A DNA stretch of 64,000 nt from Lepidodermella squamata (GCA_047495785.1 JBLDXI010000003.1:4030001-4094000); one strand, 5' to 3'; shown: positions 39,872-64,000, counted from the first letter of the stretch. Translations and numbers: made by a program. The notes: a model not told the origin generated them from the sequence alone.

Positions 39872-40845
39872 ACCAAGAAAGGAAATAAGTGCTTCTCTTG
39901 TAGATTTTTCTGTTCGAAGATTCGAAATAGAATGCAATTCCTTAATACCTTGATTTTTCCTATTCTGGCGACCTTAGATCAGCGGTTCTCACGACTGGGC
40001 ATTTCCCGACCCTAAAAGTTGCTTTCAAGAAAATTGTGCGACCCTGGCGTTTAAATTTTGTGCTATATTACTCAAAATGACTAGTGATTTCAACCTAAAA
40101 ACGAGCGAAGCGAGGAAATTTCGAAGATTTTTCACTGAAAAACGCTTCAAAACCTGTTAAAATGTCTCGTGGCTCGTGAAAATTGAGTGATTTCTTCACT
40201 TTTATCTCACCACTCATCATTTATTTAGTTTTTTATATATTTTCGCCTTGCGACCCATGCGACCTGCTGTCCACCTAGCGACCCATCAGAAAAGCCTCTG
40301 CGACCCAATTTTGGGTCGCAAACCCCCTCATGAGAACCGCTGCCTTAGATCATGAAGATGAGGGTGGCGGTTGGCTTATTCCGAAATCGGAACGTTTAAT
40401 GAAAACCAATGAGCTGGCTGCGTATTTCATGGAAAATGCCCATGGTGCTGCCGAAAAATCTAGCTGTCGAAGTTGGGATGAGAACGAATTTCACGGAACG
40501 TGTTGATATCGATTTCAGTGTATTGCTGTTACGGTGGATGATATTCAGAAAAGCTTGTCAATGTTTATTGAGAGTGGCATCAATTGGTTGATTCCTTGCG
40601 ACCTAGGGTTTCGCTGATTGGGTCTACCGCATGTACCCAGAGAGTGTATTCTTTTGGAAAAATCTCAGCGATATGTGGTATCCGAAATGTACCCATTTGC
40701 CTTAATCGACTCTCGATTCCTCTTGAAAAGTGAGTTAATCTTTCAAATTGGGAGTGAAATTATTGTATTCTGTATGAATAGGCTGATTGAGAGGATAATG
40801 GCATTTCTGTTAGAAAAAACCCAGCCGGTGAAACCAAAAATGTAA
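39872..40845 (+). pseudogene. Decayed coding sequence of unknown family, interrupted by the hAT MITE and running into array unit 1
   Basis: Removing the MITE and one TSD restores a single frame (MQFLNTLIFPILATLD/HEDEGGGWLIPKSERL...TQPVKPKM*) of about 200 codons with only 2 internal TGA stops. Confidence 0.4.
39980..40342. mobile_element. Non-autonomous hAT (Charlie-like) MITE, 363 bp
   Basis: 12-bp perfect TIR cagcggttctca / tgagaaccgctg; 8-bp TSD ccttagat at 39972-39979 and 40343-40350; repeated subterminal gcgaccc motifs. Confidence 0.92.
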
Positions 40846-40922
40846 AAAATTATTTTATCAGTTTTTATTGCGAGCGTCATCGATTGCATTTCATTTATAG
40901 TTATTAATGTTGGCACACTTAC

Positions 40923-42755
40923 TTATTCAGACATTAGTTTATCGAATAGCTTCGGGCTACCAGGCCAAATAAGTGTCAACTCGGCAAGTCGTGACGGCCA
41001 CTGCTTGAAATGCTTCCGGCGCATGTTGCTGTCAAGGTGGCGGAAAAGCGTTGCAGGGAAAACGAGGGCTGCTTCTAGAGCATGGATTTTCATCAAAGCT
41101 TGATAGAATTCTTCCATTAAAGCGGATGCTCGAAATAGTCCTCGATCGGTAGTTGCGAGACCTGAGCAGAGGCTAGGAATGATGTGAAGGGCGACAGGAT
41201 TTAACTCTAAACATGGACGTATCCGGCATGCTTTCGCAAGTAATTCTTCCAAATGGCCCAAGTTTTGTTTTGAAAATTTCTTCGAGGCGGTTATCCTGTC
41301 AGCCGAGAGCTTGATCATGCTGAGAGCGGAAAGATTTGCGGCTGAATCTTTCCGATCCATTTCGCACAGGCGGCATCTGCATTCGAAGCCAAATTTCTCT
41401 CGCAGCGACTTTTCCCTTGTCTGGAAGTCTTCGAAAGGTGTACAGTAGTCCCACAAGAGTTGTTCGCCTTTTCGAACTTTGCGAGTTACGCGGACAAATA
41501 AAAAGCGGCCGATGAAAGTTCGGCAGCAATTTGTGTCTACGCAGCTGTGATTTATATAGCTCGGCATTATCCAAAGTCCACAGCCATAGTTTCCTTTGTT
41601 ATTAGCAATATACGTCTCCATTGAAAGAGAATTGTGGTTGACGATAGCAGCTAGGGTTTCAGCGCCTTCATCCGTAAAGGGATCTCTGCTTTTCGACTTG
41701 ATTTTCGCGCCACAATATAGCTTATAGAACTCCTCGGATATATCTGGTCGAGCGTCCAATTTTTCTATTACCGCTACAAGAAAATCTGCTGACTGACTCT
41801 CATCACACGCAGAGTGAGGCTGAGGGAAATAGTTGAAAGCTCGCTCTGCTATTACCAAAGTCCCAGGTTCAATATCGGTTGTTGCGACTAGGCCTCGCCC
41901 ATAACCATCAATTTCCTCGATTTGAAGCATATTGCTTGCAAAGTAGTTGGCATGGTTGCTCAGCATAGGATCGCTTTTAGCCTCGTCGATCATTTTCATT
42001 TCATCGAAATCTCCAGTAGTTGATTCTTTCAAGCCTCGCTCAGCCTGAGCCAAGAAAAGCTTTTCAAAACCTGGCTTCCCGCAGACGAGTTCGATACATT
42101 CTTGGTATCGATCAAGTTTCATCAGCGAGCTAGCTTTCCGCAATAGAAGCTTTGGATTGCTAGGATCGATTTCCAGCCCTATTTCAGCATCTTTCAAAGC
42201 TTGAATTGGTCGGTCCATTGCAAGGAAAGCCGCTGATTTGTTCACCAAGATTTTTACTATGGCGTCGTTGTCAGAATTTCCAGCTAGCTGTTGAGCTCTT
42301 TCGAAACAGGCTATCGCCAACTCGAATTCACTTGTTTTGTAGAAGCCAACGCCGAGTGAGTTGAAGTTGATTGCATCAATAGATCTATGCCATTCTATTC
42401 CTTCTAGAAATTTGTGATCGTCCGGAAGAATTACGATGTCTCTGGTAGATAGGCTAGCTTTAATAGCCATAGAACTGCCGATAGGTTCGATGCAGGGATT
42501 TAAAATCATCGCTTTGGCCCCAGGCTGGATTTTCTCAAAAAATCGACCTTTTAAATCAGTGATGACCAATCGAAATACGACGTTGCCATTCGCGTCATCA
42601 ACAAGAGTTGCGACTTGAAGAGGCTTGAAAGGATTCCTTGATCGCACTACAACACCAATGAATCTGACAATCAGCGATTTTTGAATAAAACTGAACCCTC
42701 TGGCTTGATAGCCGAGGTTTGCAATGCTCTGCAAGTCGATGCTAGTGCTCTCCAT
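40923..42755 (-). CDS. TPR + SET-domain protein lysine methyltransferase, 610 aa, intronless (copy 1, K353)
   Basis: TPR helices (NSLGVGFYKTSEFELAIACFERA; NKSAAFLAMDRPIQALKDAEIGLEIDPSNPKLLLRKA). SET motifs GYGRGLVA, YINHSC..N and GEQLLWDY; post-SET FECRCRLC. Confidence 0.9.
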   Translation of the reverse strand: MESTSIDLQSIANLGYQARGFSFIQKSLIVRFIGVVVRSRNPFKPLQVATLVDDANGNVVFRLVITDLKGRFFEKIQPGAKAMILNPCIEPIGSSMAIKASLSTRDIVILPDDHKFLEGIEWHRSIDAINFNSLGVGFYKTSEFELAIACFERAQQLAGNSDNDAIVKILVNKSAAFLAMDRPIQALKDAEIGLEIDPSNPKLLLRKASSLMKLDRYQECIELVCGKPGFEKLFLAQAERGLKESTTGDFDEMKMIDEAKSDPMLSNHANYFASNMLQIEEIDGYGRGLVATTDIEPGTLVIAERAFNYFPQPHSACDESQSADFLVAVIEKLDARPDISEEFYKLYCGAKIKSKSRDPFTDEGAETLAAIVNHNSLSMETYIANNKGNYGCGLWIMPSYINHSCVDTNCCRTFIGRFLFVRVTRKVRKGEQLLWDYCTPFEDFQTREKSLREKFGFECRCRLCEMDRKDSAANLSALSMIKLSADRITASKKFSKQNLGHLEELLAKACRIRPCLELNPVALHIIPSLCSGLATTDRGLFRASALMEEFYQALMKIHALEAALVFPATLFRHLDSNMRRKHFKQWPSRLAELTLIWPGSPKLFDKLMSE

Positions 42756-43520
42756 TTTTTCAAATGTAAATTGAAGTGGCGAGTCGCGCTGCTTTTACAC
42801 GCAACTGGCGTGACTCATCTTACAAAATACGTCCAAAATGAATAATATACTCATTGATAAAGCACACGTTATTCTGTTTATTTCCCAAAGATAAGAAGGA
42901 ATAATTCCTAGGAAATCTGCTCTGCTGAGCACTTTGCCCATATCATTCCTTTTTGGGTCACTTCGGTTAGACTTGATGCAGAAATTGCCAAGCAGCATTG
43001 CTGGAAAGTATTTGCAGATTCGAATGTCTTGTTTTAGAAGAACAAATTTCCCAAATTCAATTGAAGAGAAGAAATTCAAGAATTTATTACCTCAGATGCA
43101 TTAGCGACCGCCAACGGAAAATTGATGCAGGAACGAGGGGAGCCACTTGCCACATAAGGACCGGGTGTTTTATTGACGAAGCAAACGCCCTGAACAGCAT
43201 TGTCTTTTCCCGCCATTCTAACGCATGTACCCAGAGAGCGTGTGTATTCTTTTGGAAAAATCTCAGCGATATGTGGTATCCGAAATGTACCCATTTGCCT
43301 TAATCGACTCTCGATTCCTCTTGAAAAGTGAGTTAATCTTTCAAATTGGGAGTGAAATTATTGTATTCTGTATGAATAGGCTGATTGAGAGGATAATGGC
43401 ATTTCTGTTAGAAAAAACCCAGCCGGTGAAACCAAAAATGTAAAAAATTATTTTATCAGTTTTTATTGCGAGCGTCATCGATTGCATTTCATTTATAGTT
43501 ATTAATGTTGGCACACTTAC

Positions 43521-45353
43521 TTATTCAGACATTAGTTTATCGAATAGCTTCGGGCTACCAGGCCAAATAAGTGTCAACTCGGCAAGTCGTGACGGCCACT
43601 GCTTGAAATGCTTCCGGCGCATGTTGCTGTCAAGGTGGCGGAAAAGCGTTGCAGGGAAAACGAGGGCTGCTTCTAGAGCATGGATTTTCATCAAAGCTTG
43701 ATAGAATTCTTCCATTAAAGCGGATGCTCGAAATAGTCCTCGATCGGTAGTTGCGAGACCTGAGCAGAGGCTAGGAATGATGTGAAGGGCGACAGGATTT
43801 AACTCTAAACATGGACGTATCCGGCATGCTTTCGCAAGTAATTCTTCCAAATGGCCCAAGTTTTGTTTTGAAAATTTCTTCGAGGCGGTTATCCTGTCAG
43901 CCGAGAGCTTGATCATGCTGAGAGCGGAAAGATTTGCGGCTGAATCTTTCCGATCCATTTCGCACAGGCGGCATCTGCATTCGAAGCCAAATTTCTCTCG
44001 CAGCGACTTTTCCCTTGTCTGGAAGTCTTCGAAAGGTGTACAGTAGTCCCACAAGAGTTGTTCGCCTTTTCGAACTTTGCGAGTTACGCGGACAAATAAA
44101 AAGCGGCCGATGAAAGTTCGGCAGCAATTTGTGTCTACGCAGCTGTGATTTATATAGCTCGGCATTATCCAAAGTCCACAGCCATAGTTTCCTTTGTTAT
44201 TAGCAATATACGTCTCCATTGAAAGAGAATTGTGGTTGACGATAGCAGCTAGGGTTTCAGCGCCTTCATCCGTAAAGGGATCTCTGCTTTTCGACTTGAT
44301 TTTCGCGCCACAATATAGCTTATAGAACTCCTCGGATATATCTGGTCGAGCGTCCAATTTTTCTATTACCGCTACAAGAAAATCTGCTGACTGACTCTCA
44401 TCACACGCAGAGTGAGGCTGAGGGAAATAGTTGAAAGCTCGCTCTGCTATTACCAAAGTCCCAGGTTCAATATCGGTTGTTGCGACTAGGCCTCGCCCAT
44501 AACCATCAATTTCCTCGATTTGAAGCATATTGCTTGCAAAGTAGTTGGCATGGTTGCTCAGCATAGGATCGCTTTTAGCCTCGTCGATCATTTTCATTTC
44601 ATCGAAATCTCCAGTAGTTGATTCTTTCAAGCCTCGCTCAGCCTGAGCCAAGAAAAGCTTTTCAAAACCTGGCTTCCCGCAGACGAGTTCGATACATTCT
44701 TGGTATCGATCAAGTTTCATCAGCGAGCTAGCTTTCCGCAATAGAAGCTTTGGATTGCTAGGATCGATTTCCAGCCCTATTTCAGCATCTTTCAAAGCTT
44801 GAATTGGTCGGTCCATTGCAAGGAAAGCCGCTGATTTGTTCACCAAGATTTTTACTATGGCGTCGTTGTCAGAATTTCCAGCTAGCTGTTGAGCTCTTTC
44901 GAAACAGGCTATCGCCAACTCGAATTCACTTGTTTTGTAGAAGCCAACGCCGAGTGAGTTGAAGTTGATTGCATCAATAGATCTATGCCATTCTATTCCT
45001 TCTAGAAATTTGTGATCGTCCGGAAGAATTACGATGTCTCTGGTAGATAGGCTAGCTTTAATAGCCATAGAACTGCCGATAGGTTCGATGCAGGGATTTA
45101 AAATCATCGCTTTGGCCCCAGGCTGGATTTTCTCAAAAAATCGACCTTTTAAATCAGTGATGACCAATCGAAATACGACGTTGCCATTCGCGTCATCAAC
45201 AAGAGTTGCGACTTGAAGAGGCTTGAAAGGATTCCTTGATCGCACTACAACACCAATGAATCTGACAATCAGCGATTTTTGAATAAAACTGAACCCTCTG
45301 GCTTGATAGCCGAGGTTTGCAATGCTCTGCAAGTCGATGCTAGTGCTCTCCAT
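43521..45353 (-). CDS. TPR + SET-domain methyltransferase (copy 2, K353)
   Basis: Protein identical to copy 1. Confidence 0.9.
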   Translation of the reverse strand: MESTSIDLQSIANLGYQARGFSFIQKSLIVRFIGVVVRSRNPFKPLQVATLVDDANGNVVFRLVITDLKGRFFEKIQPGAKAMILNPCIEPIGSSMAIKASLSTRDIVILPDDHKFLEGIEWHRSIDAINFNSLGVGFYKTSEFELAIACFERAQQLAGNSDNDAIVKILVNKSAAFLAMDRPIQALKDAEIGLEIDPSNPKLLLRKASSLMKLDRYQECIELVCGKPGFEKLFLAQAERGLKESTTGDFDEMKMIDEAKSDPMLSNHANYFASNMLQIEEIDGYGRGLVATTDIEPGTLVIAERAFNYFPQPHSACDESQSADFLVAVIEKLDARPDISEEFYKLYCGAKIKSKSRDPFTDEGAETLAAIVNHNSLSMETYIANNKGNYGCGLWIMPSYINHSCVDTNCCRTFIGRFLFVRVTRKVRKGEQLLWDYCTPFEDFQTREKSLREKFGFECRCRLCEMDRKDSAANLSALSMIKLSADRITASKKFSKQNLGHLEELLAKACRIRPCLELNPVALHIIPSLCSGLATTDRGLFRASALMEEFYQALMKIHALEAALVFPATLFRHLDSNMRRKHFKQWPSRLAELTLIWPGSPKLFDKLMSE

Positions 45354-46118
45354 TTTTTCAAATGTAAATTGAAGTGGCGAGTCGCGCTGCTTTTACACGC
45401 AACTGGCGTGACTCATCTTACAAAATACGTCCAAAATGAATAATATACTCATTGATAAAGCACACGTTATTCTGTTTATTTCCCAAAGATAAGAAGGAAT
45501 AATTCCTAGGAAATCTGCTCTGCTGAGCACTTTGCCCATATCATTCCTTTTTGGGTCACTTCGGTTAGACTTGATGCAGAAATTGCCAAGCAGCATTGCT
45601 GGAAAGTATTTGCAGATTCGAATGTCTTGTTTTAGAAGAACAAATTTCCCAAATTCAATTGAAGAGAAGAAATTCAAGAATTTATTACCTCAGATGCATT
45701 AGCGACCGCCAACGGAAAATTGATGCAGGAACGAGGGGAGCCACTTGCCACATAAGGACCGGGTGTTTTATTGACGAAGCAAACGCCCTGAACAGCATTG
45801 TCTTTTCCCGCCATTCTAACGCATGTACCCAGAGAGCGTGTGTATTCTTTTGGAAAAATCTCAGCGATATGTGGTATCCGAAATGTACCCATTTGCCTTA
45901 ATCGACTCTCGCATCCTCTTGAAAAGTGAGTTAATCTTCCAAATTGGGAGTGAAATTATTGTATTCTGTATGAATAGGCTGATTGAGAGGATAATGGCAT
46001 TTCTGTTAGAAAAAACCCAGCCGGTGAAACCAAAAATGTAAAAAATTATTTTATCAGTTTTTATTGCGAGCGTCATCGATTGCATTTCATTTATAGTTAT
46101 TAATGTTGGCACACTTAC

Positions 46119-47951
46119 TTATTCAGACATTAGTTTATCGAATAGCTTCGGGCTACCAGGCCAAATAAGTGTCAACTCGGCAAGTCGTGACGGCCACTGC
46201 TTGAAATGCTTCCGGCGCATGTTGCTGTCAAGGTGGCGGAAAAGCGTTGCAGGGAAAACGAGGGCTGCTTCTAGAGCATGGATTTTCATCAAAGCTTGAT
46301 AGAATTCTTCCATTAAAGCGGATGCTCGAAATAGTCCTCGATCGGTAGTTGCGAGACCTGAGCAGAGGCTAGGAATGATGTGAAGGGCGACAGGATTTAA
46401 CTCTAAACATGGACGTATCCGGCATGCTTTCGCAAGTAATTCTTCCAAATGGCCCAAGTTTTGTTTTGAAAATTTCTTCGAGGCGGTTATCCTGTCAGCC
46501 GAGAGCTTGATCATGCTGAGAGCGGAAAGATTTGCGGCTGAATCTTTCCGATCCATTTCGCACAGGCGGCATCTGCATTCGAAGCCAAATTTCTCTCGCA
46601 GCGACTTTTCCCTTGTCTGGAAGTCTTCGAAAGGTGTACAGTAGTCCCACAAGAGTTGTTCGCCTTTTCGAACTTTGCGAGTTACGCGGACAAATAAAAA
46701 GCGGCCGATGAAAGTTCGGCAGCAATTTGTGTCTACGCAGCTGTGATTTATATAGCTCGGCATTATCCAAAGTCCACAGCCATAGTTTCCTTTGTTATTA
46801 GCAATATACGTCTCCATTGAAAGAGAATTGTGGTTGACGATAGCAGCTAGGGTTTCAGCGCCTTCATCCGTAAAGGGATCTCTGCTTTTCGACTCGATTT
46901 TCGCGCCACAATATAGCTTATAGAACTCCTCGGATATATCTGGTCGAGCGTCCAATTTTTCTATTACCGCTACAAGAAAATCTGCTGACTGACTCTCATC
47001 ACACGCAGAGTGAGGCTGAGGGAAATAGTTGAAAGCTCGCTCTGCTATTACCAAAGTCCCAGGTTCAATATCGGTTGTTGCGACTAGGCCTCGCCCATAA
47101 CCATCAATTTCCTCGATTTGAAGCATATTGCTTGCAAAGTAGTTGGCATGGTTGCTCAGCATAGGATCGCTTTTAGCCTCGTCGATCATTTTCATTTCAT
47201 CGAAATCTCCAGTAGTTGATTCTTTCAAGCCTCGCTCAGCCTGAGCCAAGAAAAGCTTTTCAAAACCTGGCTTCCCGCAGACGAGTTCGATACATTCTTG
47301 GTATCGATCAAGTTTCATCAGCGAGCTAGCTTTCCGCAATAGAAGCTTTGGATTGCTAGGATCGATTTCCAGCCCTATTTCAGCATCTTTCAAAGCTTGA
47401 ATTGGTCGGTCCATTGCAAGGAAAGCCGCTGATTTGTTCACCAAGATTTTTACTATGGCGTCGTTGTCAGAATTTCCAGCTAGCTGTTGAGCTCTTTCGA
47501 AACAGGCTATCGCCAACTCGAATTCACTTGTTTTGTAGAAGCCAACGCCGAGTGAGTTGAAGTTGATTGCATCAATAGATCTATGCCATTCTATTCCTTC
47601 TAGAAATTTGTGATCGTCCGGAAGAATTACGATGTCTCTGGTAGATAGGCTAGCTTTAATAGCCATAGAACTGCCGATAGGTTCGATGCAGGGATTTAAA
47701 ATCATCGCTTTGGCCCCAGGCTGGATTTTCTCAAAAAATCGACCTTTTAAATCAGTGATGACCAATCGAAATACGACGTTGCCATTCGCGTCATCAACAA
47801 GAGTTGCGACTTGAAGAGGCTTGAAAGGATTCCTTGATCGCACTACAACACCAATGAATCTGACAATCAGCGATTTTTGAATAAAACTGAACCCTCTGGC
47901 TTGATAGCCGAGGTTTGCAATGCTCTGCAAGTCGATGCTAGTGCTCTCCAT
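46119..47951 (-). CDS. TPR + SET-domain methyltransferase (copy 3, E353)
   Basis: Same ORF with K353E. Confidence 0.9.
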   Translation of the reverse strand: MESTSIDLQSIANLGYQARGFSFIQKSLIVRFIGVVVRSRNPFKPLQVATLVDDANGNVVFRLVITDLKGRFFEKIQPGAKAMILNPCIEPIGSSMAIKASLSTRDIVILPDDHKFLEGIEWHRSIDAINFNSLGVGFYKTSEFELAIACFERAQQLAGNSDNDAIVKILVNKSAAFLAMDRPIQALKDAEIGLEIDPSNPKLLLRKASSLMKLDRYQECIELVCGKPGFEKLFLAQAERGLKESTTGDFDEMKMIDEAKSDPMLSNHANYFASNMLQIEEIDGYGRGLVATTDIEPGTLVIAERAFNYFPQPHSACDESQSADFLVAVIEKLDARPDISEEFYKLYCGAKIESKSRDPFTDEGAETLAAIVNHNSLSMETYIANNKGNYGCGLWIMPSYINHSCVDTNCCRTFIGRFLFVRVTRKVRKGEQLLWDYCTPFEDFQTREKSLREKFGFECRCRLCEMDRKDSAANLSALSMIKLSADRITASKKFSKQNLGHLEELLAKACRIRPCLELNPVALHIIPSLCSGLATTDRGLFRASALMEEFYQALMKIHALEAALVFPATLFRHLDSNMRRKHFKQWPSRLAELTLIWPGSPKLFDKLMSE

Positions 47952-48712: not shown

Positions 48713-50545
48713 TTATTCAGACATTAGTTTATCGAATAGCTTCGGGCTACCAGGCCAAATAAGTGTCAACTCGGCAAGTCGTGACGGCCACTGCTTGAAA
48801 TGCTTCCGGCGCATGTTGCTGTCAAGGTGGCGGAAAAGCGTTGCAGGGAAAACGAGGGCTGCTTCTAGAGCATGGATTTTCATCAAAGCTTGATAGAATT
48901 CTTCCATTAAAGCGGATGCTCGAAATAGTCCTCGATCGGTAGTTGCGAGACCTGAGCAGAGGCTAGGAATGATGTGAAGGGCGACAGGATTTAACTCTAA
49001 ACATGGACGTATCCGGCATGCTTTCGCAAGTAATTCTTCCAAATGGCCCAAGTTTTGTTTTGAAAATTTCTTCGAGGCGGTTATCCTGTCAGCCGAGAGC
49101 TTGATCATGCTGAGAGCGGAAAGATTTGCGGCTGAATCTTTCCGATCCATTTCGCACAGGCGGCATCTGCATTCGAAGCCAAATTTCTCTCGCAGCGACT
49201 TTTCCCTTGTCTGGAAGTCTTCGAAAGGTGTACAGTAGTCCCACAAGAGTTGTTCGCCTTTTCGAACTTTGCGAGTTACGCGGACAAATAAAAAGCGGCC
49301 GATGAAAGTTCGGCAGCAATTTGTGTCTACGCAGCTGTGATTTATATAGCTCGGCATTATCCAAAGTCCACAGCCATAGTTTCCTTTGTTATTAGCAATA
49401 TACGTCTCCATTGAAAGAGAATTGTGGTTGACGATAGCAGCTAGGGTTTCAGCGCCTTCATCCGTAAAGGGATCTCTGCTTTTCGACTCGATTTTCGCGC
49501 CACAATATAGCTTATAGAACTCCTCGGATATATCTGGTCGAGCGTCCAATTTTTCTATTACCGCTACAAGAAAATCTGCTGACTGACTCTCATCACACGC
49601 AGAGTGAGGCTGAGGGAAATAGTTGAAAGCTCGCTCTGCTATTACCAAAGTCCCAGGTTCAATATCGGTTGTTGCGACTAGGCCTCGCCCATAACCATCA
49701 ATTTCCTCGATTTGAAGCATATTGCTTGCAAAGTAGTTGGCATGGTTGCTCAGCATAGGATCGCTTTTAGCCTCGTCGATCATTTTCATTTCATCGAAAT
49801 CTCCAGTAGTTGATTCTTTCAAGCCTCGCTCAGCCTGAGCCAAGAAAAGCTTTTCAAAACCTGGCTTCCCGCAGACGAGTTCGATACATTCTTGGTATCG
49901 ATCAAGTTTCATCAGCGAGCTAGCTTTCCGCAATAGAAGCTTTGGATTGCTAGGATCGATTTCCAGCCCTATTTCAGCATCTTTCAAAGCTTGAATTGGT
50001 CGGTCCATTGCAAGGAAAGCCGCTGATTTGTTCACCAAGATTTTTACTATGGCGTCGTTGTCAGAATTTCCAGCTAGCTGTTGAGCTCTTTCGAAACAGG
50101 CTATCGCCAACTCGAATTCACTTGTTTTGTAGAAGCCAACGCCGAGTGAGTTGAAGTTGATTGCATCAATAGATCTATGCCATTCTATTCCTTCTAGAAA
50201 TTTGTGATCGTCCGGAAGAATTACGATGTCTCTGGTAGATAGGCTAGCTTTAATAGCCATAGAACTGCCGATAGGTTCGATGCAGGGATTTAAAATCATC
50301 GCTTTGGCCCCAGGCTGGATTTTCTCAAAAAATCGACCTTTTAAATCAGTGATGACCAATCGAAATACGACGTTGCCATTCGCGTCATCAACAAGAGTTG
50401 CGACTTGAAGAGGCTTGAAAGGATTCCTTGATCGCACTACAACACCAATGAATCTGACAATCAGCGATTTTTGAATAAAACTGAACCCTCTGGCTTGATA
50501 GCCGAGGTTTGCAATGCTCTGCAAGTCGATGCTAGTGCTCTCCAT
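48713..50545 (-). CDS. TPR + SET-domain methyltransferase (copy 4, E353)
   Basis: Same 610-aa ORF. Confidence 0.9.
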   Translation of the reverse strand: MESTSIDLQSIANLGYQARGFSFIQKSLIVRFIGVVVRSRNPFKPLQVATLVDDANGNVVFRLVITDLKGRFFEKIQPGAKAMILNPCIEPIGSSMAIKASLSTRDIVILPDDHKFLEGIEWHRSIDAINFNSLGVGFYKTSEFELAIACFERAQQLAGNSDNDAIVKILVNKSAAFLAMDRPIQALKDAEIGLEIDPSNPKLLLRKASSLMKLDRYQECIELVCGKPGFEKLFLAQAERGLKESTTGDFDEMKMIDEAKSDPMLSNHANYFASNMLQIEEIDGYGRGLVATTDIEPGTLVIAERAFNYFPQPHSACDESQSADFLVAVIEKLDARPDISEEFYKLYCGAKIESKSRDPFTDEGAETLAAIVNHNSLSMETYIANNKGNYGCGLWIMPSYINHSCVDTNCCRTFIGRFLFVRVTRKVRKGEQLLWDYCTPFEDFQTREKSLREKFGFECRCRLCEMDRKDSAANLSALSMIKLSADRITASKKFSKQNLGHLEELLAKACRIRPCLELNPVALHIIPSLCSGLATTDRGLFRASALMEEFYQALMKIHALEAALVFPATLFRHLDSNMRRKHFKQWPSRLAELTLIWPGSPKLFDKLMSE

Positions 50546-53904: not shown

Positions 53905-55737
53905 TTATTCAGACATTAGTTTATCGAATAGCTTCGGGCTACCAGGCCAAATAAGTGTCAACTCGGCAAGTCGTGACGGCCACTGCTTGAAATGCTTCCG
54001 GCGCATGTTGCTGTCAAGGTGGCGGAAAAGCGTTGCAGGGAAAACGAGGGCTGCTTCTAGAGCATGGATTTTCATCAAAGCTTGATAGAATTCTTCCATT
54101 AAAGCGGATGCTCGAAATAGTCCTCGATCGGTAGTTGCGAGACCTGAGCAGAGGCTAGGAATGATGTGAAGGGCGACAGGATTTAACTCTAAACATGGAC
54201 GTATCCGGCATGCTTTCGCAAGTAATTCTTCCAAATGGCCCAAGTTTTGTTTTGAAAATTTCTTCGAGGCGGTTATCCTGTCAGCCGAGAGCTTGATCAT
54301 GCTGAGAGCGGAAAGATTTGCGGCTGAATCTTTCCGATCCATTTCGCACAGGCGGCATCTGCATTCGAAGCCAAATTTCTCTCGCAGCGACTTTTCCCTT
54401 GTCTGGAAGTCTTCGAAAGGTGTACAGTAGTCCCACAAGAGTTGTTCGCCTTTTCGAACTTTGCGAGTTACGCGGACAAATAAAAAGCGGCCGATGAAAG
54501 TTCGGCAGCAATTTGTGTCTACGCAGCTGTGATTTATATAGCTCGGCATTATCCAAAGTCCACAGCCATAGTTTCCTTTGTTATTAGCAATATACGTCTC
54601 CATTGAAAGAGAATTGTGGTTGACGATAGCAGCTAGGGTTTCAGCGCCTTCATCCGTAAAGGGATCTCTGCTTTTCGACTCGATTTTCGCGCCACAATAT
54701 AGCTTATAGAACTCCTCGGATATATCTGGTCGAGCGTCCAATTTTTCTATTACCGCTACAAGAAAATCTGCTGACTGACTCTCATCACACGCAGAGTGAG
54801 GCTGAGGGAAATAGTTGAAAGCTCGCTCTGCTATTACCAAAGTCCCAGGTTCAATATCGGTTGTTGCGACTAGGCCTCGCCCATAACCATCAATTTCCTC
54901 GATTTGAAGCATATTGCTTGCAAAGTAGTTGGCATGGTTGCTCAGCATAGGATCGCTTTTAGCCTCGTCGATCATTTTCATTTCATCGAAATCTCCAGTA
55001 GTTGATTCTTTCAAGCCTCGCTCAGCCTGAGCCAAGAAAAGCTTTTCAAAACCTGGCTTCCCGCAGACGAGTTCGATACATTCTTGGTATCGATCAAGTT
55101 TCATCAGCGAGCTAGCTTTCCGCAATAGAAGCTTTGGATTGCTAGGATCGATTTCCAGCCCTATTTCAGCATCTTTCAAAGCTTGAATTGGTCGGTCCAT
55201 TGCAAGGAAAGCCGCTGATTTGTTCACCAAGATTTTTACTATGGCGTCGTTGTCAGAATTTCCAGCTAGCTGTTGAGCTCTTTCGAAACAGGCTATCGCC
55301 AACTCGAATTCACTTGTTTTGTAGAAGCCAACGCCGAGTGAGTTGAAGTTGATTGCATCAATAGATCTATGCCATTCTATTCCTTCTAGAAATTTGTGAT
55401 CGTCCGGAAGAATTACGATGTCTCTGGTAGATAGGCTAGCTTTAATAGCCATAGAACTGCCGATAGGTTCGATGCAGGGATTTAAAATCATCGCTTTGGC
55501 CCCAGGCTGGATTTTCTCAAAAAATCGACCTTTTAAATCAGTGATGACCAATCGAAATACGACGTTGCCATTCGCGTCATCAACAAGAGTTGCGACTTGA
55601 AGAGGCTTGAAAGGATTCCTTGATCGCACTACAACACCAATGAATCTGACAATCAGCGATTTTTGAATAAAACTGAACCCTCTGGCTTGATAGCCGAGGT
55701 TTGCAATGCTCTGCAAGTCGATGCTAGTGCTCTCCAT
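53905..55737 (-). CDS. TPR + SET-domain methyltransferase (copy 6, E353)
   Basis: Same 610-aa ORF; the 4-kb TIR element sits about 520 bp upstream of its ATG. Confidence 0.9.
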   Translation of the reverse strand: MESTSIDLQSIANLGYQARGFSFIQKSLIVRFIGVVVRSRNPFKPLQVATLVDDANGNVVFRLVITDLKGRFFEKIQPGAKAMILNPCIEPIGSSMAIKASLSTRDIVILPDDHKFLEGIEWHRSIDAINFNSLGVGFYKTSEFELAIACFERAQQLAGNSDNDAIVKILVNKSAAFLAMDRPIQALKDAEIGLEIDPSNPKLLLRKASSLMKLDRYQECIELVCGKPGFEKLFLAQAERGLKESTTGDFDEMKMIDEAKSDPMLSNHANYFASNMLQIEEIDGYGRGLVATTDIEPGTLVIAERAFNYFPQPHSACDESQSADFLVAVIEKLDARPDISEEFYKLYCGAKIESKSRDPFTDEGAETLAAIVNHNSLSMETYIANNKGNYGCGLWIMPSYINHSCVDTNCCRTFIGRFLFVRVTRKVRKGEQLLWDYCTPFEDFQTREKSLREKFGFECRCRLCEMDRKDSAANLSALSMIKLSADRITASKKFSKQNLGHLEELLAKACRIRPCLELNPVALHIIPSLCSGLATTDRGLFRASALMEEFYQALMKIHALEAALVFPATLFRHLDSNMRRKHFKQWPSRLAELTLIWPGSPKLFDKLMSE

Positions 55738-56254
55738 TTTTTCAAATGTAAATTGAAGTGGCGAGTCGCGCTGCTTTTACACGCAACTGGCGTGACTCAT
55801 CTTACAAAATACGTCCAAAATGAATAATATACTCATTGATAAAGCACACGTTATTCTGTTTATTTCCCAAAGATAAGAAGGAATAATTCCTAGGAAATCT
55901 GCTCTGCTGAGCACTTTGCCCATATCATTCCTTTTTGGGTCACTTCGGTTAGACTTGATGCAGAAATTGCCAAGCAGCATTGCTGGAAAGTATTTGCAGA
56001 TTCGAATGTCTTGTTTTAGAAGAACAAATTTCCCAAATTCAATTGAAGAGAAGAAATTCAAGAATTTATTACCTCAGATGCATTAGCGACCGCCAACGGA
56101 AAATTGATGCAGGAACGAGGGGAGCCACTTGCCACATAAGGACCGGGTGTTTTATTGACGAAGCAAACGCCCTGAACAGCATTGTCTTTTCCCGCCATTC
56201 TAACGCATGTACCCAGAGAGCGTGTGTATTCTTTTGGAAAAATCTCAGCGATAT

Positions 56255-57501
56255 CGATGATTTTGCGCTAAAGCCGACCAACGAGAAAAAAATTCCTATA
56301 CAGAGTACTGCGCACAATAAGAAGTACTACGCGCGCAAAATATTATAAGATATACTTATAGCCCGCATTCTGTGTGAAAAAATGAATGTACTGGACAAAT
56401 GACCAACAAATATAAGTGCGCTTTTGTGGATGTTACCATGAAATCTTCTGCTTACCTGGTAGAGAACTGTCGAAAGTATCAGGAAATCGATAGAAAAGCA
56501 TGTGCAACCGTGGGTTATTCACCGCTAGGCGACTTGAAAGTGATCTGAAAGCGCAAAAACCTTGGAAAAATGCACCCACTGGTGTCTTGAGCGGCGTTTC
56601 TGCGAAAACAAAATGGGTTCACCCACAGTTTTTTCACATTCCCTAGCCGAGCACATGGAGGGCTTATTAGGGAAGTAAGAAATAGCCAGTTAATATGGAG
56701 GACATCCACGGCTTTTCAGTATTTTTCCTCCCGGCTTGAAAATCGTGGAAAAAGCGAAAATTGTATGTTTTTAGTCGCTCTTATCTCGAAAACACCCATG
56801 GTTGCACCATAGCTTTTTGTAGTCAAATAGGAGAAGGCACTAGGAGGAAGGTTTTAACAGGGAAAACAGCAAGAACCACCCCAACTTATCCAAGACTTTT
56901 TCGTCCTGATTAGCACTCACTACGTCACACCCAACACCTCGAAAATGCATGGCCTGGCGTCTTTTGGGGCATTGCTGCAAAAAAGAGCATGGGTTCAACC
57001 ACAGTTTTTCACGTCCTTTAGCAGAGCACAAGAAGATCTTACTCAGGAAGTAAGAAATTGCCAGTAAATGCGGTGTTTATCCACGGGTTAAGAGTCTTTT
57101 CTCTCCACATCCGATTCAAGTCCGAATCGAAGAGAAAGTGAGGATTTTTCATCTTTCATGGCACTTATCTTGAAAAAACCCATGGCTGCACCATAAGTGT
57201 TTGTATTCAAACAGTAGAGGAGATTGAGAAGAAGGTTTCAAAAGAGAAAACAGCACGAACCACGACAACTTATCCACGACTTTTTCGCCTTGATGGACAA
57301 TCACATTTTAAGCTCAAAATCGAACTTCAAAACTGGGCTATTCACCTTACCTTACGCGGCAGAGCCCTTATTTCACCTGTAACAAGTTGAATGAAGCGCA
57401 TACTTCTTATAAAATAGCAAATAATATGCGGGTGCTACCATGATTTGCCATGATTTTCCATTCGGTCCCAGACCGCGGTAACAAGACGGTTATGGTAAGG
57501 A
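56255..57501 (+). repeat. Left terminal inverted repeat (1247 bp)
   Basis: Runs from cgatgattttgcgctaaagccgacc to tatggtaagga. It is the reverse complement of 59026-60272; I noticed only two mismatches. Confidence 0.93.
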
Positions 57502-59025
57502 GTCATCCGATTTCAATCTCTCAATGAAGTCATGGTATCTATGGACTGACGTATTAAAGATGCATTTTCGATCATTTTTATCAACGGTAATTGCTTCCTT
57601 GTATCTGGTACGTTGTTCTTTTCGTATTCTCAAAAACTTCCATGCAAGTTGCAACTTGATTTTGCTCATTCCTTTTGCGAATGCTCCTTATGGAGCGCTA
57701 ATTGCTGGGCTCAACTTAGCTTTTGTTATCCTTCCATTTGTAGGGTGTAGAGTGGAGTGTGGTTCAGAAGTGCAAGAAGCCGTGGATAATAACGATTTGA
57801 ATCAGCACTTCACCTCCAAAGAAAGATTGCCTTGTTCCCCTCATTAGAAGGAAATGAGAGAAAACTTGGCTTACATAGTCTGAGTGATAGAGGAAAAGAA
57901 AAACCGCCGACAGCGCCATCTGCTTCATCATGTCGGTGTATTGTGTGGTATTCAAGAAAATCAGCTGGAGTGAACACTTTTGCAACGATGGATCGAAACG
58001 TTTTCAAGTCGGATTAGCGGTTGTTATAGAAAGAAAAGATGTTCCTTGAAACCTCTATCGACGGAGCGGTCGACAGTAGGTGGGTCAATCGCACAATAGA
58101 GGCCGGCGAGGGACACGCAAGAAATCGTTTGTGTTGTGCAATAATGTAGCTTAACGACAGCATTCTCTTCCACACTGGTCAGATTAGAGAAAAATGGCCA
58201 TCCGTCGCGGTTTTTTTTATTACGGACGGTAAACATCAGCCAAATTCATTAAATTGACTGATCTGAGAAGAGCGATAGATTCAAGTGCTGCTACAGTCCC
58301 TCGGGATAACTTTTCCCATTGGCGCTAAAACGTGATACAGTGCCATCTCATGTAGCTAAAATCCTTGCTTTTTAGTAATTTCAATCAACGCTGCACTCAA
58401 CTCAACTTTCCAAACCGCGGAAACACCTTGATCCGTCATTTTCCCATATTTTCCGTCAAATGCGTCTATCGCGTTCTATTGTTGGCGCCGCCCACCGTCA
58501 ACTTTTTTGTTTCCTGTTCAAAGAACTAACTAGCTTGCAAGTGCCTTTAGATAGGAAGCATCATCTTCGGGTAGCTGAGTTTGTGACCAATGTATGTAAG
58601 TTGGGTAGGTTACATTTGGTTAGGACCAGAGGGCAGACTCCCGTAGCCCGATACCTCCACGCCCATCTCCTTTTGGTCCGATGTTGTGAGCATTTTAAGC
58701 ACAGGGACGTCGGTCACTCCAAGTCTCTGGTAAACCAAGACCAAGTCTCCCAATTGGCTGGTAGCTAGTTAGCTAAAGCTTTTCTAGACGATCGTTTTGC
58801 ACTCGCTGAGAGTCCGCTTTCGACGACAGCAGGGCGTACGCGACGCGACCCAACGTTTGCCGTGAATTACGTTGCCCGCTACCGCCACGGGGAGGCTGCC
58901 GTTGTCGCTTGAACAGCAGTCAGCTCTACGATCTAACACTCATTTGTGTAATTTTGTCAATAGGGCTTTCCATATTAGCAGTGTGGAACTTTAGCTCAGG
59001 GGATGGAAGGTTTTAGCGAACTGAA

Positions 59026-60272
59026 TCCTTACCATAACCGTCTTGTTACCGCGGTCTGGGACCGAATGGAAAATCATGGCAAATCATGGTAGCACCCGCA
59101 TATTATTTGCTATTTTATAAGAAGTATGCGCTTCATTCAACTTGTTACAGGTGAAATAAGGGCTCTGCCGCGTAAGGTAAGGTGAATAGCCCAGTTTTGA
59201 AGTTCGATTTTGAGCTTAAAATGTGATTGTCCATCAAGGCGAAAAAGTCGTGGATAAGTTGTCGTGGTTCGTGCTGTTTTCTCTTTTGAAACCTTCTTCT
59301 CAATCTCCTCTACTGTTTGAATACAAACACTTATGGTGCAGCCATGGGTTTTTTCAAGATAAGTGCCATGAAAGATGAAAAATCCTCACTTTCTCTTCGA
59401 TTCGGACTTGAATCGGATGTGGAGAGAAAAGACTCTTAACCCGTGGATAAACACCGCATTTACTGGCAATTTCTTACTTCCTGAGTAAGATCTTCTTGTG
59501 CTCTACTAAAGGACGTGAAAAACTGTGGTTGAACCCATGCTCTTTTTTGCAGCAATGCCCCAAAAGACGCCAGGCCATGCATTTTCGAGGTGTTGGGTGT
59601 GACGTAGTGAGTGCTAATCAGGACGAAAAAGTCTTGGATAAGTTGGGGTGGTTCTTGCTGTTTTCCCTGTTAAAACCTTCCTCCTAGTGCCTTCTCCTAT
59701 TTGACTACAAAAAGCTATGGTGCAACCATGGGTGTTTTCGAGATAAGAGCGACTAAAAACATACAATTTTCGCTTTTTCCACGATTTTCAAGCCGGGAGG
59801 AAAAATACTGAAAAGCCGTGGATGTCCTCCATATTAACTGGCTATTTCTTACTTCCCTAATAAGCCCTCCATGTGCTCGGCTAGGGAATGTGAAAAAACT
59901 GTGGGTGAACCCATTTTGTTTTCGCAGAAACGCCGCTCAAGACACCAGTGGGTGCATTTTTCCAAGGTTTTTGCGCTTTCAGATCACTTTCAAGTCGCCT
60001 AGCGGTGAATAACCCACGGTTGCACATGCTTTTCTATCGATTTCCTGATACTTTCGACAGTTCTCTACCAGGTAAGCAGAAGATTTCATGGTAACATCCA
60101 CAAAAGCGCACTTATATTTGTTGGTCATTTGTCCAGTACATTCATTTTTTCACACAGAATGCGGGCTATAAGTATATCTTATAATATTATGCGCGCGTAG
60201 TACTTCTTATTGTGCGCAGTACTCTGTATAGGAATTTTTTTCTCGTTGGTCGGCTTTAGCGCAAAATCATCG
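59026..60272 (-). repeat. Right terminal inverted repeat (1247 bp)
   Basis: Runs from tccttaccata to gcgcaaaatcatcg. Mirror ORFs 56515-56709(-)/59818-60012(+) and 56840-57031(-)/59496-59687(+) confirm the inversion. Confidence 0.93.
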
Positions 60273-60520
60273 ATATGTGGTATCCGAAATGTACCCATTT
60301 GCCTTAATCGACTCTCGCATCCTCTTGAAAAGTGAGTTAATCTTCCAAATTGGGAGTGAAATTATTGTATTCTGTATGAATAGGCTGATTGAGAGGATAA
60401 TGGCATTTCTGTTAGAAAAAACCCAGCCGGTGAAACCAAAAATGTAAAAAATTATTTTATCAGTTTTTATTGCGAGCGTCATCGATTGCATTTCCTTTAT
60501 AGTTATTAATGTTGGCACAC

Positions 60521-62353
60521 TTATTCAGACATTAGTTTATCGAATAGCTTCGGGCTACCAGGCCAAATAAGTGTCAACTCGGCAAGTCGTGACGGCCACT
60601 GCTTGAAATGCTTCCGGCGCATGTTGCTGTCAAGGTGGCGGAAAAGCGTTGCAGGGAAAACGAGGGCTGCTTCTAGAGCATGGATTTTCATCAAAGCTTG
60701 ATAGAATTCTTCCATTAAAGCGGATGCTCGAAATAGTCCTCGATCGGTAGTTGCGAGACCTGAGCAGAGGCTAGGAATGATGTGAAGGGCGACAGGATTT
60801 AACTCTAAACATGGACGTATCCGGCATGCTTTCGCAAGTAATTCTTCCAAATGGCCCAAGTTTTGTTTTGAAAATTTCTTCGAGGCGGTTATCCTGTCAG
60901 CCGAGAGCTTGATCATGCTGAGAGCGGAAAGATTTGCGGCTGAATCTTTCCGATCCATTTCGCACAGGCGGCATCTGCATTCGAAGCCAAATTTCTCTCG
61001 CAGCGACTTTTCCCTTGTCTGGAAGTCTTCGAAAGGTGTACAGTAGTCCCACAAGAGTTGTTCGCCTTTTCGAACTTTGCGAGTTACGCGGACAAATAAA
61101 AAGCGGCCGATGAAAGTTCGGCAGCAATTTGTGTCTACGCAGCTGTGATTTATATAGCTCGGCATTATCCAAAGTCCACAGCCATAGTTTCCTTTGTTAT
61201 TAGCAATATACGTCTCCATTGAAAGAGAATTGTGGTTGACGATAGCAGCTAGGGTTTCAGCGCCTTCATCCGTAAAGGGATCTCTGCTTTTCGACTCGAT
61301 TTTCGCGCCACAATATAGCTTATAGAACTCCTCGGATATATCTGGTCGAGCGTCCAATTTTTCTATTACCGCTACAAGAAAATCTGCTGACTGACTCTCA
61401 TCACACGCAGAGTGAGGCTGAGGGAAATAGTTGAAAGCTCGCTCTGCTATTACCAAAGTCCCAGGTTCAATATCGGTTGTTGCGACTAGGCCTCGCCCAT
61501 AACCATCAATTTCCTCGATTTGAAGCATATTGCTTGCAAAGTAGTTGGCATGGTTGCTCAGCATAGGATCGCTTTTAGCCTCGTCGATCATTTTCATTTC
61601 ATCGAAATCTCCAGTAGTTGATTCTTTCAAGCCTCGCTCAGCCTGAGCCAAGAAAAGCTTTTCAAAACCTGGCTTCCCGCAGACGAGTTCGATACATTCT
61701 TGGTATCGATCAAGTTTCATCAGCGAGCTAGCTTTCCGCAATAGAAGCTTTGGATTGCTAGGATCGATTTCCAGCCCTATTTCAGCATCTTTCAAAGCTT
61801 GAATTGGTCGGTCCATTGCAAGGAAAGCCGCTGATTTGTTCACCAAGATTTTTACTATGGCGTCGTTGTCAGAATTTCCAGCTAGCTGTTGAGCTCTTTC
61901 GAAACAGGCTATCGCCAACTCGAATTCACTTGTTTTGTAGAAGCCAACGCCGAGTGAGTTGAAGTTGATTGCATCAATAGATCTATGCCATTCTATTCCT
62001 TCTAGAAATTTGTGATCGTCCGGAAGAATTACGATGTCTCTGGTAGATAGGCTAGCTTTAATAGCCATAGAACTGCCGATAGGTTCGATGCAGGGATTTA
62101 AAATCATCGCTTTGGCCCCAGGCTGGATTTTCTCAAAAAATCGACCTTTTAAATCAGTGATGACCAATCGAAATACGACGTTGCCATTCGCGTCATCAAC
62201 AAGAGTTGCGACTTGAAGAGGCTTGAAAGGATTCCTTGATCGCACTACAACACCAATGAATCTGACAATCAGCGATTTTTGAATAAAACTGAACCCTCTG
62301 GCTTGATAGCCGAGGTTTGCAATGCTCTGCAAGCCGATGCTAGTGCTCTCCAT
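60521..62353 (-). CDS. TPR + SET-domain methyltransferase (copy 7, D7G, E353)
   Basis: Same ORF with a private D7G change. Confidence 0.9.
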   Translation of the reverse strand: MESTSIGLQSIANLGYQARGFSFIQKSLIVRFIGVVVRSRNPFKPLQVATLVDDANGNVVFRLVITDLKGRFFEKIQPGAKAMILNPCIEPIGSSMAIKASLSTRDIVILPDDHKFLEGIEWHRSIDAINFNSLGVGFYKTSEFELAIACFERAQQLAGNSDNDAIVKILVNKSAAFLAMDRPIQALKDAEIGLEIDPSNPKLLLRKASSLMKLDRYQECIELVCGKPGFEKLFLAQAERGLKESTTGDFDEMKMIDEAKSDPMLSNHANYFASNMLQIEEIDGYGRGLVATTDIEPGTLVIAERAFNYFPQPHSACDESQSADFLVAVIEKLDARPDISEEFYKLYCGAKIESKSRDPFTDEGAETLAAIVNHNSLSMETYIANNKGNYGCGLWIMPSYINHSCVDTNCCRTFIGRFLFVRVTRKVRKGEQLLWDYCTPFEDFQTREKSLREKFGFECRCRLCEMDRKDSAANLSALSMIKLSADRITASKKFSKQNLGHLEELLAKACRIRPCLELNPVALHIIPSLCSGLATTDRGLFRASALMEEFYQALMKIHALEAALVFPATLFRHLDSNMRRKHFKQWPSRLAELTLIWPGSPKLFDKLMSE

Positions 62354-63114
62354 TTTTTCAAATGTAAATTGAAGTGGCGAGTCGCGCTGCTTTTACACGC
62401 AACTGGCGTGACTCATCTTACAAAATACGTCCAAAATGAATAATATACTCATTGATAAAGCACACGTTATTCTGTTTATTTCCCAAAGATAAGAAGGAAT
62501 AATTCCTAGGAAATCTGCTCTGCTGAGCACTTTGCCCATATCATTCCTTTTTGGGTCACTTCGGTCAGACTTGAGGCAGAAATTGCCAAGCAGCATTGCT
62601 GGAAAGTATTTGCAGATTCGAATGTCTTGTTTTAGAAGAACAAATTTCCCAAATTCAATTGAAGAGAAGAAATTCAAGAATTTATTACCTCAGATGCATT
62701 AGCGACCGCCAACGGAAAATTGATGCAGGAACGAGGGGAGCCACTTGCCACATAAGGACCGGGTGTTTTATTGACGAAGCAAACGCCCTGAACAGCATTG
62801 TCTTTTCCCGCCATTCTAACGCATGTACCCAGAGAGCGTGTGTATTCTTTTGGAAAAATCTCAGCGATATGTGGTATCCGAAATGTACCCATTTGCCTTA
62901 ATCGACTCTCGCATCCTCTTGAAAAGTGAGTTAATCTTCCAAATTGGGAGTGAAATTATTGTATTCTGTATGAATAGGCTGATTGAGAGGATAATGGCAT
63001 TTCTGTTAGAAAAAACCCAGCCGGTGAAACCAAAAATGTAAAAAATTATTTTATCAGTTTTTATTGCGAGCGTCATCGATTGCATTTCCTTTATAGTTAT
63101 TAATGTTGGCACAC

Positions 63115-64000
63115 TTATTCAGACATTAGTTTATCGAATAGCTTCGGGCTACCAGGCCAAATAAGTGTCAACTCGGCAAGTCGTGACGGCCACTGCTTGA
63201 AATGCTTCCGGCGCATGTTGCTGTCAAGGTGGCGGAAAAGCGTTGCAGGGAAAACGAGGGCTGCTTCTAGAGCATGGATTTTCATCAAAGCTTGATAGAA
63301 TTCTTCCATTAAAGCGGATGCTCGAAATAGTCCTCGATCGGTAGTTGCGAGACCTGAGCAGAGGCTAGGAATGATGTGAAGGGCGACAGGATTTAACTCT
63401 AAACATGGACGTATCCGGCATGCTTTCGCAAGTAATTCTTCCAAATGGCCCAAGTTTTGTTTTGAAAATTTCTTCGAGGCGGTTATCCTGTCAGCCGAGA
63501 GCTTGATCATGCTGAGAGCGGAAAGATTTGCGGCTGAATCTTTCCGATCCATTTCGCACAGGCGGCATCTGCATTCGAAGCCAAATTTCTCTCGCAGCGA
63601 CTTTTCCCTTGTCTGGAAGTCTTCGAAAGGTGTACAGTAGTCCCACAAGAGTTGTTCGCCTTTTCGAACTTTGCGAGTTACGCAGACAAATAAAAAGCGG
63701 CCGATGAAAGTTCGGCAGCAATTTGTGTCTACGCAGCTGTGATTTATATAGCTCGGCATTATCCAAAGTCCACAGCCATAGTTTCCTTTGTTATTAGCAA
63801 TATACGTCTCCATTGAAAGAGAATTGTGGTTGACGATAGCAGCTAGGGTTTCAGCGCCTTCATCCGTAAAGGGATCTCTGCTTTTCGACTCGATTTTCGC
63901 GCCACAATATAGCTTATAGAACTCCTCGGATATATCTGGTCGAGCGTCCAATTTTTCTATTACCGCTACAAGAAAATCTGCTGACTGACTCTCATCACAC
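63115..64000 (-). CDS. TPR + SET-domain methyltransferase (copy 8, partial at window edge, R422C)
   Basis: 3' half of the same ORF; FVRVT reads FVCVT. Confidence 0.88.
   Translation of the reverse strand, partial: CDESQSADFLVAVIEKLDARPDISEEFYKLYCGAKIESKSRDPFTDEGAETLAAIVNHNSLSMETYIANNKGNYGCGLWIMPSYINHSCVDTNCCRTFIGRFLFVCVTRKVRKGEQLLWDYCTPFEDFQTREKSLREKFGFECRCRLCEMDRKDSAANLSALSMIKLSADRITASKKFSKQNLGHLEELLAKACRIRPCLELNPVALHIIPSLCSGLATTDRGLFRASALMEEFYQALMKIHALEAALVFPATLFRHLDSNMRRKHFKQWPSRLAELTLIWPGSPKLFDKLMSE

Follow-up and report, generated by a model that had tools for sequence, protein, structure and literature searches.

How does an animal genome come to hold a dozen nearly identical copies of one enzyme gene in a row, and would so many copies matter to the animal? 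This question is raised by a 64,000-nucleotide (nt) stretch of the genome of Lepidodermella squamata (GCA_047495785.1, JBLDXI010000003.1:4030001-4094000), here called the window. Its right-hand part is occupied by a tandem array of a gene encoding a protein with OB, TPR and SET domains. An earlier note, made from the sequence alone, had described this array as a recent amplification of an intronless TPR-SET methyltransferase gene with 8 or more intact copies. Based on the analysis presented below, the array is quite probably a genuine and very young tandem segmental duplication, comprising 12 copies of an intact, expressed gene for a probable methyltransferase.

Extent of the array and variation among its units

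Using one unit as a query against the window extended with fetched downstream sequence (extended coordinates continue the window numbering past 64000), the Basic Local Alignment Search Tool (BLAST) recovered 12 units that are 99.8-100% identical over their full length, with no more than 5 mismatches per 2.6-kilobase (kb) unit. The array starts at window position 40623 and extends 11,789 nt beyond the window, to G000:C3:4105789. The head-to-tail period is 2598 or 2594 base pairs (bp), with a single interval of 6616 bp as the exception. A six-frame search of the 121-megabase (Mb) assembly found exactly 12 full-length, stop-free copies of the gene, all of them within G000:C3:4070926-4105323. All 12 open reading frames (ORFs) are open over 1833 nt and encode 610 amino acids (aa), and pairwise differences between those in the window amount to 0-2 nt.

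The array is thus larger than the 8 or more intact copies proposed earlier, and much else in that description agrees with our results: a coding sequence (CDS) of 1833 nt with a spacer of ~765 nt, in line with the observed period; seven complete open copies, the eighth running off the window end from 63115; and a very recent amplification, as seen from the few mismatches per unit. The start, previously placed at 40628, is at 40623 according to BLAST, the other coordinates being correct. The repeat was described as regularly head-to-tail, which is true overall but not between copies 6 and 7, where it is interrupted by a 4012-bp insertion (56255-60266). Tandem Repeats Finder did not report the array in the window because the longest period that it handles is 500. 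The array and its copies within the window are as follows:

40623-64000, minus strand: in-window portion of the array (unit BLAST, 12 matches; both edges at unit position ~2295-2299)
40923-42755, minus strand: ORF of copy 1, OB-TPR-SET protein, variant E353K (ORF list, pairwise differences, Pfam, AlphaFold2)
43521-45353, minus strand: ORF of copy 2 (ORF list)
46119-47951, minus strand: ORF of copy 3 (ORF list)
48713-50545, minus strand: ORF of copy 4 (ORF list)
51307-53139, minus strand: ORF of copy 5 (ORF list)
53905-55737, minus strand: ORF of copy 6 (ORF list)
60521-62353, minus strand: ORF of copy 7 (ORF list)
63115-64000, minus strand: ORF of copy 8, variant R422C, truncated by the window end; complete at 63115-64947 in extended coordinates (ORF list, assembly search)

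The units differ at ~10 variable sites, which are shared among them in a mosaic pattern; for example, the spacer of unit 6 groups with units 1-2, whereas its CDS groups with the others. A 4-nt insertion or deletion just past the stop codon gives rise to the two period lengths (2594 and 2598 bp). The three coding variants are all nonsynonymous: E353K (copies 1-2), D7G (copy 7) and R422C (copies 8 and 10). Such mosaic sharing of variants fits unequal exchange or conversion between units. The insertion between copies 6 and 7 is a transposon:

56255-60266, no strand assigned: foldback-type non-autonomous transposon with long terminal inverted repeats, 4012 bp, in the spacer between copies 6 and 7 (inverted-repeat search, insertion junctions)

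Its arms of 1255 nt are 100% complementary inverted repeats and flank a core of 1516 nt. Owing to the palindromic ends of the transposon, its target duplication may be read as either ATAT or TA. The element is present in a single unit only; it was inserted after the array had formed and did not spread to other units. Elsewhere in the genome the same family is represented by at least 5 copies at 97-99% identity and by ~15 at 80-90%. As a separate observation, these near-identical copies make the transposon family appear to have been active recently.

Anatomy of the unit and mode of duplication

Both edges of the array fall at the identical position of the unit. The tetranucleotide TCTA is present at both native edges, on the left (40623) and on the right (extended 75789), and each internal junction is a simple join at this 4-bp microhomology. 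What the unit contains becomes clear from the gene lying upstream of the array on the same strand, here called U1, which we modelled from the right flank together with unit 12. U1 has four exons, separated by introns of 55, 63 and 63 nt, and its 190-aa product is a secreted, Cys-rich protein. Exon 3 of U1 is cut at about codon 108 by the right breakpoint of the duplication, and therefore every unit carries a 3' fragment of this gene. In transcription order, the unit consists of the last 130 nt of U1 exon 3, intron 3, exon 4 with its stop codon, a 151-nt gap, the SET ORF and 300 nt of 3' flank. In unit 1 these parts are located as follows (X1, X2 and X3 denote the sequencing runs introduced in the next section):

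43217-43224, no strand assigned: unit-to-unit junction, 43220/43221, the only sequence created by the duplication (junction comparison; covered by X1 and X2 contigs)
42907-43220, minus strand: U1 3' fragment, present in every unit; exon 3 part 43091-43220, GT..AG intron 43028-43090 (63 nt), exon 4 42907-43027 with its stop codon at 42909-42907
42756-42906 (151 nt), minus strand: gap between the stop of the U1 fragment and the SET ATG, presumed to hold a compact promoter and a short 5' untranslated region (UTR), as judged from sequence
40850-40922, minus strand: 3' UTR of copy 1, 73 nt long; AATAAA signal, 40869-40864; poly(A) site, 40850

The unit begins 227 nt beyond the poly(A) site, ends within an exon of the neighbouring gene and includes the 63-nt intron of that gene. 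Because the unit ignores gene boundaries and keeps the U1 intron, the amplification is a DNA-level segmental duplication and not the result of retroposition. The splice joint 43027/43091 is seen in complementary DNA (cDNA) runs X2 and X3. The intron at 43028-43090 was also considered as an intron in the 5' UTR of the SET gene, a candidate that we rejected, as the right flank shows it to be U1 intron 3.

With respect to U1 itself, the array includes 11 dead copies of its 3' fragment. Directly to the right of the array, U1 and a paralogue, U2, form two tandem four-exon genes on the minus strand (L034:1370-2940; G000:C3:4105659-4107229), each encoding a small secreted Cys-rich protein of ~190 aa. 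Pfam gave no match for the U1 and U2 proteins, nor for U1 exon 3 or for a 388-aa ORF beyond the array.

Independent runs and transcription

Data independent of the assembly come from three runs available as Logan contigs, X1 (DNA-like), X2 and X3 (cDNA), in which contig depth is indicative only and does not measure copy number. In X1, a 2624-nt contig over 40644-43271 corresponds to one unit plus the k-mer overlap; it spans the duplication junction and closes on itself, so the tandem junction is present in the DNA of another sample. A second X1 contig crosses the left edge of the array. The X1 unit departs from copy 1 only where the majority units of the reference do too, and over 2.6 kb it is identical to the majority unit, while the X1 flank differs from the reference by ~1.5-3.4%. 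The depth of the unit contig is 463 versus 65-87 for flank contigs, and this ratio of ~5-7 suggests a lower copy number, about 5-7, in the X1 sample. X2, which contains the SMART cDNA oligo and yields many CDS contigs, includes a contig spanning the unit junction (43213-43333). It also has a loose end of 30 letters at 43221. These letters were considered as a spliced leader, an idea that was rejected, since their only match in the genome is in the right flank, immediately at the array edge; they thereby confirm this edge of the array as well.

These data bear on two less favoured explanations of the array. The first is that an assembler over-expanded a low-copy gene. Near-identical 2.6-kb repeats are indeed hard to assemble. 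However, the units differ in mosaic variants and fall into two length classes, one of them holds a transposon of 4 kb that no other unit has, an X1 contig with ~5-7 times the flank depth is closed on a single unit, and the inter-copy variants of the assembly recur in X1 and X2. Because of these copy-specific variants, the transposon confined to one unit, and the closed X1 contig together with the left-edge junction, we regard an assembly artefact as very improbable. The second is that the unit is a mobile or extrachromosomal element, either the cargo of a transposon or a circular DNA. Self-closure of the X1 contig would also be expected of a 2.6-kb circle. Nonetheless, the unit has neither terminal repeats nor a target-site duplication, its junction is a simple microhomology, identical copies occur at only one locus in 121 Mb, and contigs tie the unit to both native flanks. 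The chance that such an element accounts for the array seems to us almost negligible. Tandem segmental duplication of a chromosomal segment remains the reading that we adopt.

The array gene is also transcribed. In X3, a 1869-nt contig is collinear with 40850-42702 and then continues into 20 non-templated T on the plus strand, which represent the poly(A) tail of a minus-strand messenger RNA (mRNA) positioned 19 nt past AATAAA. In other words, the SET gene is transcribed and polyadenylated, and its CDS is uninterrupted, just as the intronless CDS reported earlier implied. A lack of expression had been named as an observation that would speak against the amplification; the cDNA contigs and the poly(A) tail answer this point. 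In X2, contig depth over the CDS is roughly 600-2200 versus 10-30 for the neighbouring Ror gene, although this depth is unreliable. As for the start of transcription, the 205 nt 5' of the SET ATG are identical in 12 of 12 units, and the 151-nt gap contains a TATA-like motif (42849-42844) and TGAGTCA (42817-42811), both recognized from sequence only. An X2 cDNA contig ends at 42767, and contig depth falls upstream of this position, which is suggestive only.

Domain architecture of the protein

Pfam detects two regions in the 610-aa protein, SET (expect value (E) 1.6e-12) and TPR_1 (E 3.4e-8), with TPR_1/TPR_2 at residues 132-160. The SET motifs noted previously (GxG, NHSC, GExLxxDY and post-SET CxCxxC) are indeed intact, as GYGRG 284-288, NHSC 402-405, GEQLLWDY 430-437 and CRCRLC 459-464. 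By sequence, its best PDB matches are to SMYD3 and SMYD2 (E 1e-10); NHSC, the catalytic Tyr (Y437) and the post-SET Cys residues align with theirs. A full AlphaFold2 model, built with 22 sequences, has a predicted local distance difference test score (pLDDT) of 85 and a predicted template modelling score (pTM) of 0.83. The top 39 Foldseek matches of this model are SMYD1/2/3 (E 2e-10, ~430 columns). No zf-MYND domain was matched by Pfam in the protein, and the SET insert (residues 312-388) is helical, without a Cys/His cluster. The C-terminal helices (471-608) fall within the ~430-column alignments with SMYD2/3.

The N-terminal 112 residues, for which Pfam gave no match, adopt an OB fold when modelled alone (pLDDT 85.5), with Teb1, RPA and SSB as the best structural matches (template modelling score (TM) up to 0.74). 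They are followed by a three-repeat TPR (residues 121-250) that aligns to the TPR domains of TOM70, RPAP3 and SGT1. We assigned the carboxylate-clamp positions from HOP and TOM70, taking them to be K and N in repeat 1, N in repeat 2, and K and R in repeat 3. Compared with the clamp TPR of TOM70, N172, K202 and R206 are kept, while repeat 1 has N and V for the expected K and N; several paralogues retain 'GN' at the repeat-1 clamp position.

The protein thus combines an OB fold, a TPR, a SMYD-like SET domain with a post-SET zinc motif but without MYND, and a helical C-terminal domain. Its SET core, helical SET-I insert and C-terminal TPR-like helical domain all have counterparts in SMYD1/2/3, as do the post-SET Cys motif, NHSC and the catalytic Tyr. 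However, the MYND finger splitting SET is found in the SMYD proteins only, the N-terminal OB and TPR are additional here, and sequence identity is just 13-19%. The combination of TPR with an OB fold also recalls TTC5/STRAP, and Foldseek does match the N-terminal domain to the OB domain of TTC5, among others. In TTC5/STRAP, however, the domain order is reversed, SET is missing, and the similarity (TM 0.48-0.58) is weaker than that to the OB folds of RPA and Teb1. Since the motifs for S-adenosylmethionine binding and for catalysis are intact, the protein is most likely an active lysine methyltransferase, with histone possibly among its substrates.

Relatives and origin of the gene

Word-based and exhaustive HMMER protein searches gave 773 matches at E <1e-10, and in neither did we find an orthologue above 36% identity. 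The best named matches outside the species come from Glomeromycota, Endogonales and Ascomycota, at 28-36% identity and E down to 8e-43. An Atlas fold search identified full-length structural neighbours (residues 19-609) in two Ascomycota clusters of SET+TPR proteins, with TM of 0.72-0.74. The OB-type N-terminal domain can be aligned in fungal and fern members. Look-alikes by Atlas features, which involve no alignment and are leads only, form clusters commonest in Rotifera and clusters automatically named ATXR2. Proteins with a SET5/SET6/SMYD-related SET domain and an upstream TPR were described as a family restricted to filamentous fungi (Veerappan et al. 2008, PMC2474616). This family (PMC2474616) includes proteins that databases label 'methyltransferase FGSG_00040' and 'ATXR2'-like; our literature search on FGSG_00040 found only a cluster listing. 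The array protein resembles the fungal TPR-SET family in its full-length domain order, in the SET5/SET6/SMYD type of SET and in the TPR upstream of SET. It differs in that its host is an animal, as seen from genes for Ror, Exo84, RINT1 and an animal-like HMG-CoA synthase, in the identity of only 28-36%, and in that the animal copies form a clade of their own; no member of the family is known to have been studied functionally. For the HMG-CoA synthase, identity to named relatives does not exceed 48%.

The array gene is far from alone in its genome. At least 20 further loci encode proteins with 25-37% identity to it, most of them as single open frames of 460-690 aa. Several paralogues lie in older tandem clusters and one pair is 75% identical, while the nearest paralogue of the array gene has 35-37% identity. 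The older OB-TPR-SET clusters, with 29-75% identity within them, are listed below:

G000:C29:1522004-1528689: older OB-TPR-SET cluster
G000:C54:1487284-1497077: older OB-TPR-SET cluster
G000:C19:1563781-1568407: older OB-TPR-SET cluster
G000:C46:1530078-1531961: older OB-TPR-SET cluster; its paralogue has at least one canonical GT..AG intron

The OB-TPR-SET family grew by repeated tandem duplication. In a quick maximum likelihood tree (LG+G4), with the Shimodaira-Hasegawa-like approximate likelihood ratio test (SH-aLRT) as the only support measure, the 15 usable paralogues group without exception in a single, long-branched clade (SH-aLRT 100), and the array gene pairs with L014 (35% identity). 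A weakly attached neighbour clade includes a springtail protein. Given the animal host and this springtail protein, the TPR-SET family is wider than first described. The statement in the earlier note that no standard metazoan SET gene is organized this way was consequently too strong, in view of the fungal TPR-SET architecture (PMC2474616), the springtail relatives, the rotifer look-alike leads and at least 15 old paralogues, several of them in tandem clusters.

Was the gene acquired recently from a fungus, or is it a recent retrogene? The fungal identity of the best named outside relatives, the TPR-SET architecture known from fungi and a CDS without an intron would agree with such an origin. 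However, identity to outside proteins does not exceed 36%, the 15 paralogues make up a single long-branched clade in which the nearest relative of the array gene is only 35-37% identical, at least one paralogue has a GT..AG intron, the springtail protein sits in the weakly attached neighbour clade, and the guanine plus cytosine (G+C) content of the array gene is like that of its neighbours. In addition, the unit is not bounded by mRNA ends and holds the neighbour's intron, so that the amplification itself was not a retroposition. We consider both variants of a recent origin highly unlikely. In particular, recent fungal transfer is not supported by the sequence comparisons, because old paralogues at 25-37% identity form one clade. 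An ancient transfer and patchy vertical descent would be equally compatible with the data.

Course of events and gene dosage

The most likely course of events behind the array is as follows. A 2.6-kb segment was first tandemly duplicated head-to-tail via the 4-bp microhomology; unequal exchange between the copies then most likely brought their number to ~12, after which a transposon was inserted into one spacer. The outcome would be a higher dose of the OB-TPR-SET enzyme, which is intact, expressed and probably a protein lysine methyltransferase, and whose OB and TPR modules might serve as the means of finding a substrate or partner. Each unit is probably a self-sufficient transcription unit, because it has a single-exon gene with ~150 nt upstream and its own poly(A) signal; if so, the array would raise the dose of one protein, and internal copies would be using their own promoter.

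Several points weigh against this account of the array. The exact count of 12 is that of the assembly, and the supporting runs are Logan contigs, which cannot reveal transcript starts or which copies are expressed. The 151-nt gap is only a putative promoter, and the low-depth cDNA contigs across the junction could equally mean read-through from the outermost copy. To our knowledge, enzymatic data exist for no member of the OB-TPR-SET family. Finally, two of the five chaperone-clamp residues appear to be replaced, which makes the docking partner uncertain.

As a type of event, the 12-copy amplification is a familiar one. Young amplifications such as those of metallothionein, esterase and amylase genes likewise consist of head-to-tail, near-identical whole-gene units with a microhomology junction, mosaic variants and a probable difference in copy number between samples. 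What sets the present case apart is the amplified gene, which encodes a SET-domain enzyme without a known substrate or selective agent. The analogy with ribosomal DNA (rDNA) or histone arrays drawn earlier is loose. Arrays of the rDNA/histone type are large, conserved species-wide and maintained by concerted evolution; in the present case a single locus holds 12 copies, and the contig depth ratio in the X1 sample suggests possibly fewer, ~5-7.

Might the array have been driven by positive selection for a higher enzyme dose and have spread through the population recently, as in metallothionein or esterase amplifications? Supporting this idea are the 12 of 12 ORFs and upstream regions that are intact and identical or nearly so, the high X2 contig depth over the CDS relative to Ror (unreliable as it is), and the X1 unit, which equals the majority unit over 2.6 kb next to a flank diverged by ~1.5-3.4%, as would be seen after a sweep. 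However, concerted evolution also produces unit identity across haplotypes, with no need for selection. E353K, D7G and R422C are all nonsynonymous but too few for testing, no condition has been linked to the gene, and the X1 ratio of ~5-7 copies means that copy number may simply drift. On balance, selection is a possible explanation, but a doubtful one. Still less probable, in our opinion, is a more far-reaching version, in which the array would be a recently swept, dosage-selected and lineage-specific OB-TPR-SET enzyme, with the OB domain targeting single-stranded nucleic acid or peptide, from a 'fungal-type' family of more than 25 genes recruited for a stress or defence role absent from model animals.

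Irrespective of selection, the locus offers a clean, datable animal gene amplification, in which the junction, the order of events (duplication, expansion, transposon) and expression can all be read from sequence. Moreover, the OB-TPR-SET family, first called specific to filamentous fungi, also occurs in an animal and has expanded strongly there, one member now having 12 copies. Should copy number track environment or expression, the locus would be a convenient entry to the function of the family; failing that, it counts as a young copy-number variant of the ordinary type.

Neighbouring genes and other features of the window

To the left, the array is adjoined by a convergent gene for a receptor tyrosine kinase, whose earlier identification as Ror is borne out by its Pfam domains:

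36132-39523, plus strand: Ror-type receptor tyrosine kinase, left neighbour, convergent with the array; large exons 36132-37568 and 37754-39523 (Pfam Fz, Kringle, PK_Tyr_Ser-Thr)

For window 38800-40673, which comprises the Ror 3' exon and intergenic sequence, X1 and X2 contain a second haplotype that differs from the reference by 1.5-3.4%. Since both alleles are visible at 39239-39424, nucleotide diversity in the species is high. Between Ror and the array, the segment 39982-40375 has an X1 contig depth 10-20 times that of the flank and many loose ends, and is probably a dispersed repeat. Farther to the left, a 338-aa ORF at 15030-16046 has a partial RVT_1 match and is probably a retroelement remnant. 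The genes around it are those for HMG-CoA synthase (8326-9312), RINT1 (11326-12972) and Exo84 (23480-24802).

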